DNA from: Paramoeba atlantica
Taxonomy: Eukaryota > Protista > Discosea
Length of the DNA stretch: 64,000 nt
NCBI GenBank assembly: GCA_977017575.1
Contig: CDRNVI010000164.1
Coordinates: forward strand, 430,399 to 494,398
Direction: 5' to 3'
The position numbers and the translations under genes were made by a program. Numbering within the stretch: the stretch's first letter is position 1; every line of letters starts with the position of its first letter. Of the stretch, positions 28,951 to 33,397 are shown in pieces. A model generated the notes under the pieces. That model did no database searches, was not told where the DNA came from, and saw only the letters and a list, made by a program, of their open reading frames with translations.

Positions 28951-29585
28951 CTAACCAATTGCCCGTTTGATTGTGGTGAAATTAGTTCCAAAATGACCAA
29001 ACTGTGAAATATTTTCATCACACCAATGACCCCTAAAATGGTCTTCAAATATTTTCCCACAAACTCGACAGGAAATTCCAAAGTGAGCTCCATCACAAAA
29101 AGTATCACAATCGTTTTGATGGGACAGAGAAAAATCCCCTCTGGCATTAGTTTCCAAACAATTATGACCGCTGTGATAACCAAAAGATCTTCGACAAACA
29201 AGACAATTTCTTCCTTTGTGTGACTTTTCACAACGTGCATCACACACCTCATCTACATCAAATCAAAATTAACACAAGATATTGGAAAGAGAGGGCAAGG
29301 AATCCCAAAAAGAAAACCTTTGGGAGCGAGTGGCTCATTCCCTTTCTCGTAATCCCACATCAATGTCGAATTCCCCTTATTTACTCCGCGTGCTTTGTGG
29401 TTCTGCAAATGTTGAATGAATCTCTGTTGAATGAGAATGAACGAAAAGAAGGGAGGAAATACCTGTGGGAACTCTTTGGGAGCTGGTACAGACCGAGGTT
29501 GATCAAGATTTTCCTCGATCACTTCCTCTGAGACAACTTTTTCTTGATGTTTTCGAAAAGAATTCCTTCGGAGAGCATTTCCCAT
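28951..29585 (-). CDS. Cys/His tandem-repeat family protein, copy 1
   Basis: Three exons: MGNALRRNSF...EFPQ | NHKARGVNKGNSTLMWDYEKGNEPLAPK | DEVCDARCEKSHKGRNCLVC...IKRAIG*. GT-AG introns at the same phases in all copies. Confidence 0.8.
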
Positions 29586-29962
29586 TATCTTCTCCAACAG
29601 GTAATAAAAAAAAGTCTCAGTTCCACCAACCGAAAAAAAATTAGTGTGTTTTTGAGCCAACCCAAATTTGGTGATCCAATAATGTTTGCTCTCTCAAGTC
29701 AAGATGAAAGGATCGGGGGGAAACAAAGAGGCGGGACTTTATTGTTTTTTTTTCTAACTCTTTTTACTTTTTCACCAAAACTCCTCCTCTCTTTTTCTTC
29801 GTTTTTATTTTCCACAAAGCCCCCACATCAGTTTTTGTTGTTGGGTTTTGGGTCCAAATTCAAAAGGAATGGGACTTATTGTTTTTTCAACCAATTATAT
29901 TTTGGGATCTGATCAAAAGGATTGATCTTGTTTTCTTTTTACAATCTTTTTTTTTTTTGAAA

Positions 29963-30611
29963 CTAACCAATTGCCCGTTTGATTGTGGTGAAATTAACTC
30001 CAAAATTACCAAACTGTGAAATCTTTTCATCACACCAATGACCCTCAAAATGCTTTTCAAATATTTTACCACAAACTCGACAGGAAATTCCAAAATGAAC
30101 TCCATCACAAAAAGTATCACAATCATTTTGATGGGACAGAGAAAAATTCCCTCTGGCACTAGTTTCCAAACAATCATGACCACCATGATAACCAAAAGAT
30201 CTTCGACAAACAAGACAATTTCTTCCTTTGTGTGACTTTTCACAACGTGCATCACACACCTCATCTACATCAAATCAAAATTAACACAAGATATTGGAAA
30301 GAGAGGGCAAGGAATCCCAAAAAGAAAACCTTTGGGAGTGAGTGGCTCATTCCCTTTCTCGTAATCCCACATCAATGTCGAATTCCCCTCATTTACTCCG
30401 CGTGCTTTGTGGTTCTGCAAATGTTGAATGAATCTCTGTTGAATGAGAATGAATGAAAGAAGGGAGGAAATACCTGTGGGAACTCTTTGGGAGGCGCCAA
30501 AGATCCAGGTCGAAGAGAAACAGGTCGATCAAGATTTTCCTCGATCACTTCCTCTGGACCCACTTTTTCTTGGTGTTTTCGAAAAGAATTCCTTCGGAGA
30601 GCATTTCCCAT
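29963..30611 (-). CDS. Cys/His tandem-repeat family protein, copy 2
   Basis: Near-identical to copy 1, same exon structure, intact frame. Confidence 0.8.
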
Positions 30612-30794
30612 TATCTTCTCCAACAGAGAATAAATTTTTTAAAAAAGAGTCTCAGTTCTTTCACCAACCAACCGAAAAAAATTGGTGTGTTTTTGAGCCA
30701 ACCCAAATTTGGTTACCAATAATTATTTTGCTCTTTCGCTTGAAACGGTTGCACCGAAAGCAAAATTATTTTTTGGGAGGTTGGTTGGGTGAGA

Positions 30795-31448
30795 ATGGGA
30801 AATGTTCTCCGAAGATACTCTTTTCAGGAGCATCAAGAAAACTCAGAGGTGGTGATCGAGGAAAATCTTGATCTTTCTCCTGGACCTGACCACAATCCCA
30901 AAAATCTCAAAGAGTTCCCAAAGGTATTTCCTTCCTTCTTTCATTCATCTTCAAAAAAAACAAGGCCACCAGAGATTCAACTTTCGAAAACAGAACCACA
31001 AAGGATATGGAGTCAATCGAAAGAACAGCATAATAATGTGGGACTACGAAAAAGGGAATGATCCTCTCGCTCCCAAAGGTTTTCATTCTTTTGAACTTCC
31101 CTCTCTTTTTCGATTCACACTATCTTAGATGAGGTGTGTGATGCACGTTGTACAAAGTATCATAAAGGAAGAAATTGTCTTGTTTGTCGAAAATCTTTTG
31201 GTTATCACAGTGGTTCGCAGGTCCATGATTGCCCAGAGCCGGAGCACAACGCCAGAGCAAATTTTTCTTTAGCCCATCAAACCAATTGTGATACCTTTTG
31301 TGATGGAGTTCATTTTGGAATTTCATGTCGAGTTTGTGGTAAAAAATTTAAAGACCATTTTAGGGGACATTGGTGTGACGAAAAGCTTTCACAGTATGGT
31401 CATTTTGGAACTAATTATTTCACAACAATCAAACGGGCAGTTCGTTAG
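30795..31448 (+). CDS. Cys/His tandem-repeat family protein, copy 3
   Basis: MGNVLRRYSF...EFPK | NHKGYGVNRKNSIIMWDYEKGNDPLAPK | DEVCDARC...IKRAVR*; head-to-head with copy 2. Confidence 0.8.
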
Positions 31449-31526
31449 GATATTCATTGTAAAAAGAGTCTTTCACTAATTCATAATAAAATGTTGTGTG
31501 ATGATTCTTTTCTTTTTGGGGGATCC

Positions 31527-31604
31527 GATTTTCCTCAATCACTTCCTCTGAGACCACTTTTGGTGTGTTTTCGAAAACAAATCCTTCAAAGACCTTTTTC
31601 CCAT
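31527..31604 (-). pseudogene. Frameshifted, truncated exon-1 remnant of the Cys/His repeat family
   Basis: Homologous to copy 1 exon 1 (gattttcctc.atcacttcctctgagac...ttcccatt.tcttctccaacag) but reads MGKRSLKDLFSKTHQKWSQRK*. Confidence 0.75.
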
Positions 31605-31724
31605 TCTCTTCTCCAACAGACAGAGAAAATTTGGCTGTCTGTTTTGCGCCAGAAGCCAAATTTGGTGAATCAATAATTTTTTTTTGGGGGGGGGTTGGTT
31701 GGTTGGTTGGTTGGTTGGGCGAGA

Positions 31725-32401
31725 ATGGGAAATGTTCTCCGAAGAAAGTCTCTTCAGAAACATCAAGAAAACTCAGAGGAGGAGATCGAGGAAAATCTTG
31801 ATCGACCTGTTTTTCTTGGTCCTGACCACATTCCCGAGTTCCCCCAGGTATTTCCTTCTTTTTCTTCATCTTCATTCAAAAAAAAACAAAGGCCACCAGA
31901 CATTCAATTTTCGAAAACAGAACCACAAAGGATCTGGAGTAAATAAGAAGAATTCGACATTGATGTGGGACTACGAGAAAGGGAATAAACCACTCGCTCC
32001 CAAAGGTTTTTTTTCGTTCATTCCTTTGAACAGGTCATCCTCTCTCTTTTTCGATTCACACTATCGTAGATAAGGTGTGCGATGCACGTTGTCAAAAGTA
32101 TCATAAAGGAAGAAATTGTCTTGTTTGTCGAAAATCTTTTGGTTATCATAGCGGTAATTCTTTCCATAGTTGCCCGGTGCCAGGGCACAAGACCAGAGGG
32201 GATTTTTCTTTAGCCCATCAAACCAATTGTGATACTTTTTGTGATGGAGTTCATTTTGGAATTTCTTGTCGAGTTTGTGGTAAAATATTTGAAGACCATT
32301 TTGAGGGACATTGGTGTGATGAAAAGCTTTCACAGTATGGTATTTTTGGAACTAATTTTGGAACTAATCATTTCATAACAATCAAACGGGCAGTTCGTTA
32401 G
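31725..32401 (+). CDS. Cys/His tandem-repeat family protein, copy 4
   Basis: MGNVLRRKSL...EFPQ | NHKGSGVNKKNSTLMWDYEKG... | DKVCDARC...IKRAVR*. Confidence 0.8.
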
Positions 32402-32519
32402 GATATTCATTGTAAAAAGAGTCTTTCACTAATTCATAATAAAATGTTGTGTGAGGATTCTTTTCTTTTTTTTTTTTTTTTTTTGGGGGATCCGATTTTC
32501 CTCCAACAAAAACGGATTC

Positions 32520-32588
32520 TCAAGGAAGAGTCTCTTTTCGAAAGAAAGGAACAAGACATTTTGGGATTTGAAGTCTTCCATTTGAATC
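32520..32588 (-). pseudogene. Orphan duplicate of the terminal exon of the seryl-tRNA synthetase gene
   Basis: 32402-32643 is nearly identical to 33380-33615, which contains the SerRS last exon (..[16 protein letters not shown]). The copy has lost one G at the acceptor junction and has no upstream exons. Confidence 0.8.
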
Positions 32589-32719
32589 TTTTGAGAGAAA
32601 CGGGGGTGAGCCAAAAAAAATCTCGTCCTTGAGATTATTTGAAATTTGGGTACCAATAATTATTTTGCTCTATTTGAAACACCGAAAAGCAAAATTATTT
32701 TTTGGGAGGTTGGGTGAGA

Positions 32720-33397
32720 ATGGGAAATGTTCTCCAAAGAAACTCTTTTCAGGAGCATCAAGAAAACTCAGAGGTGGTGATCGAGGAAAATCTTGATCTT
32801 TCTCCTGGACCTGACCACAATCCCAAAAATCTCAAAGAGTTCCCAAAGGTATTTCCTTCCTTCTTTCATTCATCTTCAAAAAAAACAAGGCCACCAGAGA
32901 TTCAACTTTCGAAAACAGAACCACAAAGGATATGGAGTCAATCGAAAGAATGAGGTAATGATGTGGGACTACGAGAAAGGGAATAAACCACTCGCTCCCA
33001 AAGGTTTTTTTTCGTTCATTCCTTTGAACAGATCAGCCTCTTTTTTTCAATTCACACTATCGTAGATAAGGTGTGCGATGCACGTTGTCAAAAGGACCAT
33101 AAAGGAAGAAATTGTCTTGTTTGTCGAAAATCTTTTGGTTTCCACACCGGTTTGCATATCCATGATTGCCTAAATACCAATACCAGAGCAAATTTTTCTT
33201 TAGCCCATCAAACCAATTGTGATACTTTTTGTGATGGAGTTCATTTTGGAATTTCATGTCGAATTTGTGGCAAAATATTTGAAGACCATTTTGAGGGTCA
33301 TTGGTGTGATGAAAAGCTTTCACAGTATGGTCGTTTTGGAACTAATTATTTCACAACAATCAAACGGGCAGTTCGTCAGGATATTTATTCATTGTAA
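32720..33397 (+). CDS. Cys/His tandem-repeat family protein, copy 5 (C-terminus extended by TAG>CAG)
   Basis: Exon 1 nearly identical to copy 3; ends IKRAVRQDIYSL*. Confidence 0.8.

Follow-up and report, generated by a model that had tools for sequence, protein, structure and literature searches.

The five-gene array

A stretch of 64,000 nucleotides (nt) from contig C164 of the amoeba Paramoeba atlantica, here called the window, contains between positions 28951 and 33397 five paralogous genes, the small products of which each carry two copies of a Cys/His-rich repeat that we term the Cys5His3 unit. An earlier note, made from the letters of the window, had described a five-gene array with two copies facing left and three facing right. 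Exon boundaries and reading frames bear this out, with copies 1 and 2 on the minus strand and copies 3 to 5 on the plus strand. All five genes are intact and consist of three exons and two GT–AG introns of 50–73 nt each, exon 1 being in phase 0 and exon 2 measuring 85 nt in every copy. The summed exon lengths (510, 525, 534, 540 and 546 nt) are all multiples of three and give products of 169–181 residues (aa). Start codons, donors and acceptors were placed by script, and product lengths were derived from exon arithmetic; sequence and fold searches were run on single exons. The genes and the spacer at the centre of the array are as follows:

28951–29585, minus strand: gene copy 1; exons 29585–29463, 29402–29318 and 29252–28951 (including the stop codon); 510 nt, 169 aa; introns of 60 and 65 nt
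29963–30611, minus strand: gene copy 2; exons 30611–30474, 30414–30330 and 30264–29963; 174 aa
30612–30794, no strand assigned: spacer and candidate shared promoter, 183 bp separating the divergent start codons of copies 2 (30611, minus strand) and 3 (30795, plus strand)
30795–31448, plus strand: gene copy 3; exons 30795–30923, 30994–31078 and 31129–31448; 177 aa
31725–32401, plus strand: gene copy 4; exons 31725–31847, 31921–32005 and 32070–32401; 179 aa
32720–33397, plus strand: gene copy 5; exons 32720–32848, 32919–33003 and 33066–33397; 181 aa

The spacer had previously been estimated at about 185 bp, in good agreement with the distance measured between the start codons. The product of exon 1 reads MGN[AV]L[RQ]R.S[FL]..HQE and continues into an acidic, proline-rich stretch, and the MGN start attributed to each product is indeed present in all five genes. 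The product of exon 2 ends in MWDYEKGN[EDK]PL[AT]PK. The linker first given as MWDYEKGN.PLAPK is thus found in all five proteins only in the slightly looser form MWDYEKGN.PL[AT]PK, since copy 2 has LTPK where the other four have LAPK. The two Cys/His repeats are encoded by exon 3, as is the C-terminal tail TIKRA[IV][GR], which is conserved among the copies.

The Cys5His3 unit

The unit follows the spacing C-x3-C-x3-H-x4-C-x2-C-x6-H-x(2-5)-H-x-C, after which about 8–10 residues lead to an aromatic residue. The order of the ligands is C C H C C H H C, and the gaps between them are x3(4), x3(4), x4(5), x2, x6, x2-5 and x1. The ten units of the array, each with the Cys5His3 pattern, are located as follows:

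28954–29109, minus strand: copy 1, repeat 2 and tail TIKRAIG
29110–29244, minus strand: copy 1, repeat 1
29966–30121, minus strand: copy 2, repeat 2 and tail
30122–30256, minus strand: copy 2, repeat 1
31137–31286, plus strand: copy 3, repeat 1; the unit modelled alone, with a mean predicted local distance difference test (pLDDT) score of 72
31287–31445, plus strand: copy 3, repeat 2 and tail
32078–32227, plus strand: copy 4, repeat 1
32228–32398, plus strand: copy 4, repeat 2 and tail
33074–33217, plus strand: copy 5, repeat 1
33218–33394, plus strand: copy 5, repeat 2 and tail

All ten fit the C-D-x2-C-type repeat pattern that the earlier note had assigned to them in pairs. Among 18 units from this genome, C1, C5, H9, C14, C17, H24, H30 and C32 are invariant, as is F43, and the eight Cys/His are likewise invariant in an alignment of 32 units that includes foreign ones. 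Judging from these alignments, Cys5His3 has been conserved as a unit in evolution and is a real domain. Repeats 1 and 2 of the same protein are about 35% identical (BLASTP, E 5e-5) and therefore represent an old internal duplication. The binding of two zinc ions per unit, predicted from the eight invariant Cys/His, is plausible.

Relation to known domains and predicted structure

The ligand spacing had been said to lie outside those of RING, PHD, FYVE, B-box, ZZ and AN1, and the searches agree with this, as no Pfam model at threshold and no PDB sequence or fold match was obtained. A confident match to a Pfam zinc finger, the result that the earlier note had set against its own proposal, was looked for and not found, either for the five exon-3 products at threshold or for 32 single units scanned at E ≤ 10. 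In both sets, the PHD, FYVE, B-box, ZZ and AN1 models returned zero matches at E ≤ 10. With regard to RING, one unit out of the 32 matched zf-C3HC4 at E 0.63, far from threshold, the cross-brace spacing is not observed, and Foldseek gave E > 1. With regard to C2H2, the x6 spacing departs from C-x2-4-C-x12-H-x3-5-H, and the best C2H2-type matches (E 0.098–7) did not reach the cut-offs. Stray zinc ribbons and C2H2 models made up the other sub-threshold Pfam noise. Eclosion hormone (PF04736) was considered and discarded as a chance Cys-rich similarity: it scored about 20 bits against a cut-off of 25, over positions 16–40 of 61 only, and in repeat 2 only.

Searches with other resources gave a similar outcome. 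PDB sequence profiles yielded nothing below E 0.04, the only matches being C2H2 fragments at E 0.05–6. The ESM Atlas contained no match of at least 0.9 for exon 3 and none usable for a foreign four-repeat stretch. Foldseek (PDB and BFVD) and VIA-align (48,161 chains) revealed no significant match for either of two AlphaFold2 models, and no relevant description of the Cys5His3 module was found in the literature.

The first of these models, of copy 3 exon 3 (22 alignment rows), has a mean pLDDT of 60, with about 73 in repeat 1 and about 55 in repeat 2; the second, of copy 3 repeat 1 alone (32 rows), reaches 72.3. In the single-repeat model, a helix at residues 3–9 carries C5 and H9, C14–C17 form a hairpin-like knuckle, and short helical turns at residues 21–28 carry H24. 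Because the C-x2-C knuckle is intact, the model argues against a classical cross-brace. Two nested pairings are possible, namely, C1, C5, H30, C32 with H9, C14, C17, H24, or C1, C5, H9, C32 with C14, C17, H24, H30.

These results have to be set against the possibility that one of the binuclear zinc-finger families already described (ZZ, AN1, B-box or a RING-like treble clef) includes the unit as a highly diverged member, with a function to match. The weak top rows of the Foldseek output are RING, U-box and PHD fingers, and the unit co-occurs with E3 ubiquitin ligases, as those families do. Furthermore, the second half of the unit, C-x2-C-x6-H-x2-H, is similar to the C-terminal half of a ZZ finger, and its final H-x-C is reminiscent of AN1. 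The ZZ finger (PF00569) is also a small two-zinc Cys/His module of E3 ligases, the C-terminal half of which has a C-x2-C knuckle followed by H-x2-3-H, but the Cys5His3 unit does not have its first C-x2-C and carries instead C-x3-C-x3-H on a predicted helix together with the final H-x-C. AN1 (PF01428) shares the eight ligands, the H-x-C end, a length of about 40 residues and a frequent presence on ubiquitin-related proteins, but opens with C-x2-C, has other middle spacings and gave no Pfam match. The cross-brace fingers of the RING, B-box and PHD type have eight Cys/His ligands, two presumed zinc ions and the company of ubiquitin ligases in common with the unit, whereas its spacing fits none of them and a cross-brace would divide the C14-x2-C17 knuckle between two metals. 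Finally, classical C2H2 fingers share the local C-x2-C...F...H-x(2-5)-H core and give sub-threshold matches to C2H2 chains, but the unit has six rather than twelve residues from the second Cys to the first His, and four additional invariant ligands. We consider membership of an existing family quite unlikely.

Relatives in other eukaryotes and domain partners

A search of protist proteomes with a hidden Markov model of the repeats had been proposed, and such a profile did find homologous units on foreign E3 and PARP proteins. The exhaustive HMMER search, with an 18-unit profile against 1.84 billion proteins at E ≤ 1e-3, returned 19 proteins, of which about 17 are convincing, with foreign matches at E 1e-20 to 1e-4; for those at E 1e-20 to 1e-10, the agreement goes far beyond chance. 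Further proteins came from a word search that used the four repeats of P0006 as query. Word-based searches with exon-3 profiles against 5.8 billion proteins gave only near-identical pieces and P0024, the product of an MMETSP transcript. The foreign units share the consensus GC-x3-C-x3-H-x(4-5)-C-L-x-C-G-x2-[WY]-G-x-H-S-G-H-x-C-x(4-8)-R-G-S-[WF], and hhalign aligned the amoeba units with six environmental units at 97.7% probability (E 2.3e-12). By these profile alignments, the module extends beyond the array and the amoeba lineage and is present in Rigifila ramosa and in environmental eukaryotes.

The foreign proteins contain between one and six units, and in those with partner domains no Pfam model covers the unit. 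The architectures are as follows:

P0009 (Rigifila ramosa, EukProt): ankyrin, six units, RING, B-box and SPRY (TRIM-like)
P0021: two units, WWE and PARP catalytic domain
P0020: one unit and PARP
P0028: unit and SPRY
P0029 (environmental, 345 aa): MIB_HERC2, then unit
P0030: unit and UBA
P0033: unit and HECT
P0034: unit and B-box
P0004: unit and Nup98 GLEBS motif

On account of these partners in several protist and environmental proteins, the module can be described, as far as domain architecture indicates, as uncommon yet broadly distributed, with a recurrent link to ubiquitin ligases and ADP-ribosyl transferases. In Mind bomb proteins, a ZZ finger is located after MIB_HERC2; the unit of P0029 occupies this position, which may hint at an analogous role.

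The same comparison bears on two other explanations. The proteins could be nucleic-acid-binding zinc fingers acting as small RNA or DNA regulators, which would be in line with the basic character of repeat 1 (calculated isoelectric point, pI, 8.4–10), with the weak local C2H2 similarity around C-x2-C...F..H, and with the fact that PARP and TRIM proteins elsewhere bind RNA via zinc fingers. Yet a neutral or acidic pI (4.8–6.5) was calculated for repeat 2 and for most of the environmental units, and such a non-uniform charge therefore disfavours a general role in nucleic acid binding. In addition, a classical C2H2 finger requires a longer C-to-H gap than the 6 residues present here, the matches to C2H2 models lie far below threshold, and no nuclear-type features were seen in the proteins, the N-terminus of which rather resembles a lipidation site or a basic patch. 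This explanation thus appears unlikely to us. As small Cys/His-rich products encoded in tandem, with a second array about 110 kb away, the proteins could alternatively represent a metallothionein-like amplification for metal buffering or detoxification. Their Cys and His content of about 17% is, however, well below that of metallothioneins, and the ligand spacing is fixed across distant eukaryotes within large multidomain signalling proteins; such fixed spacing is therefore the signature of a structural metal site, and we hold a buffering role to be very improbable.

Other members of the family and sequence turnover

Profile searches of the whole genome (45.7 Mb, 248 contigs, clearly eukaryotic) revealed at least seven family genes beyond the array, and 12 genes in total. 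Three two-repeat genes form the second array on contig C164 (L003, L008). Contig C148 harbours two tandem single-exon genes (L010:1411-1656 and L010:2149-2394) coding for 82-aa products with one unit each; these start with MG[AS]NFSRR and end with NIKGARG, the same type of tail as in the array proteins. Two more single-unit genes, with no MG start, are present on C164 (L032 and L033). In this genome, the module is found only on small stand-alone proteins.

The family had been taken to be recently expanded in tandem, and the pairwise dS values of 0.08–0.38 confirm that it is young (dN and dS being the non-synonymous and synonymous divergence). Pairwise dN/dS in exon 3 ranges from 0.25 to 0.9, with 0.6–0.9 in some pairs, and in distant pairs the exons are more alike than the introns (for example, 0.86 in exon 3 versus 0.54 in intron 2). 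When the repeats are computed separately over the eight two-repeat paralogs, mean dN divided by mean dS comes to about 0.5 for either one. These ratios, along with the invariance of every ligand, speak for constraint on the sequence. Repeat 1, however, has changed 2.6 times more than repeat 2, synonymously and non-synonymously alike. The variable sites of repeat 1 are the C5–H9 interval, the H24–H30 loop (0–3 extra residues) and the stretch after C32. As the difference in change is accompanied by similar dN/dS values, it suggests that repeat 2 is homogenised, for instance by gene conversion, or that the 3' half of exon 3 is under nucleotide-level constraint, and that repeat 1 diversifies.

Related genes occur in the ENA assembly ERZ24900291, the DNA of which is 92–95% identical to this genome where comparable. 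Its protein P0002 is orthologous to the divergent member of the second array, and its contig ctg2014l (L012:1269-3470) carries three tandem two-repeat genes (P0003), which share about 50% identity with the array and have MEKTIMQNKDYD at their start instead of MGN. No close counterpart of this contig was found in this genome, only dispersed repeats being matched, which would reflect either fast turnover of the family or a mixed ERZ24900291 assembly. One more two-repeat gene of the assembly encodes P0005. The database version of this protein reads a TGA (L013:4255-4257) as Trp, but in the DNA the frame stops after VKPAKRE, and the deposited product is therefore over-extended; its N-terminal part also runs through non-coding sequence. 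A piggyBac-type transposase (DDE_Tnp_1_7; L011:6452-7965) adjoins the ortholog of the divergent family copy in the ENA contig, and transposase copies 94–95% identical are scattered across several contigs of this genome.

With respect to expression, the MMETSP transcript product P0024 corresponds to the L033 paralog after splicing and differs from it at two of 78 first-exon residues. A close relative therefore transcribes and splices at least one gene of the family. This matters for the proposal that the five copies are silent or decaying duplicates devoid of present function, to which the dN/dS values of up to 0.6–0.9 in some pairs, and the absence of any transcript-derived protein for the array genes in the collections searched, lend some weight. 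Against such decay, open reading frames, splice sites, intron phases and every ligand are kept in eight out of eight two-repeat copies. Promoter-proximal flanks are conserved among the copies, as is the 3' flank of copies 3–5, where AATAAA lies about 40 nt past the stop codon. Together with the transcribed and spliced paralog, these features render the loss of function scarcely credible.

All amoeba-type members end in a short basic C-terminal tail, [IV]-K-[RPG]-A-x-[RG], with the variants TIKRAIG, TIKRAVR, NIKGARG, NIKPAKRN and VKPAKR; sites include window positions 28954–28974 and 31425–31445, L010, L013:4234-4254 and P0024. In the L033 paralog, the tail comes from its own small exon.

N-terminus and possible lipidation

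A Gly occupies position 2 in the five array proteins and the three copies of the second array (MGN), as well as in the C148 paralogs (MGA or MGS). The PROSITE-type rule for N-myristoylation, G-{EDRKHPFYW}-x2-[STAGCN]-{P}, calls for a small uncharged residue at position 6. The C148 paralogs (MG[AS]NFSRR) conform to this classical rule, whereas the five array proteins (MGN[AV]L[RQ]R) have Arg or Gln at position 6 and do not. The earlier view that the products are probably myristoylated is hence weakened: Gly2 is conserved, but position 6 agrees with the classical rule in the C148 paralogs only, and for the five array proteins we would put myristoylation at roughly one chance in three. The Gly2 is followed by a basic RRxS[FL] motif resembling a site for basophilic kinases, a combination that would suit a lipid/electrostatic switch.

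Proposed function

Many ubiquitin ligases and PARPs owe their specificity to small metal-binding modules. On balance, and with moderate confidence, we favour the view that the array proteins are stand-alone copies, amplified in tandem, of an undescribed and probably two-zinc binding module of ubiquitin and ADP-ribose signalling. The intact tandem duplicates would give rise to small cytosolic proteins, each with two Cys5His3 units encoded by the C-terminal exon, and each unit would hold two structural zinc ions. One zinc site would probably be made up of the C-x2-C knuckle and flanking histidines, and the other of the N-terminal helix ligands and the final H-x-C. The unit may act as a binding surface rather than as a catalyst, since it has no catalytic-looking residues, its copy number varies, and it keeps the company of the substrate-recognition domains SPRY, WWE, MIB_HERC2 and UBA. 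The amoeba proteins could then serve as adaptors, regulators or decoys for a ligand recognised by the same module on E3 and PARP proteins elsewhere. Gly2 and the basic RRxS stretch may add reversible membrane association, weakly supported in the array genes and better in the C148 paralogs, and the amplification in tandem, together with the clustering of variation in repeat 1, suggests that binding specificity is diversifying.

Several points weigh against this view. The link with ubiquitin and PARP pathways is drawn from fusions in distant organisms, and the one transcript-derived protein belongs to another member of the family than the five array genes. AlphaFold confidence is moderate, and the ligand pairing is a guess from metal-free models. 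As for the membrane-associated part, efficient N-myristoylation of the array proteins is made less likely by the Arg at position 6.

A bolder version would make the unit a new reader of ubiquitin or ADP-ribose signals (a ubiquitin-like modifier, an ADP-ribose mark or a degron), set free in the amoeba as lipid-anchorable, phospho-switchable stand-alone readers or decoys that diversify in conflict with symbionts, viruses or prey; this we regard as speculative and unlikely.

Returning to the module of ubiquitin and ADP-ribose signalling as favoured above, its recurrence on RING/B-box/SPRY, HECT, MIB_HERC2, UBA, WWE and PARP proteins in several protist lineages, combined with the lack of a Pfam model or structural relative, means that the inventory of components of these pathways is incomplete. 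In the amoeba array, the module is present in its simplest form, about 100 residues with two units and no other domain, which would be convenient for structural and ligand work. The array also provides an example of fast expansion in tandem, where one repeat appears to diversify and the other to be kept uniform. The association with E3 and PARP proteins gives a better functional lead than the membrane-tethered recognition family suggested previously.

Flanking features of the array

A palindrome, CCAAATTTGG, occurs in three exact copies in the 64-kb window, all of them 60–92 nt upstream of start codons of the array:

29662–29671, no strand assigned: palindrome CCAAATTTGG, 77 nt upstream of the start codon of copy 1
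30703–30712, no strand assigned: palindrome CCAAATTTGG, in the middle of the divergent spacer, common to copies 2 and 3
31656–31665, no strand assigned: palindrome CCAAATTTGG, 60 nt upstream of the start codon of copy 4

The palindrome is degenerate at copy 5 and was not found at the second array. Its copies are not independent events, because the genes are duplicates. The sequence has the form CC(A/T)6GG, which we take to be that of a MADS/SRF-type site. The start codon of copy 4 is immediately preceded by a (GGTT)n microsatellite at 31686–31715, which is shorter in copies 3 and 5. The neighbours of the array are housekeeping genes, with EF-1 beta (GST_C and EF1_GNE domains) on the left and a fragment of a class II aminoacyl-tRNA synthetase on the right.

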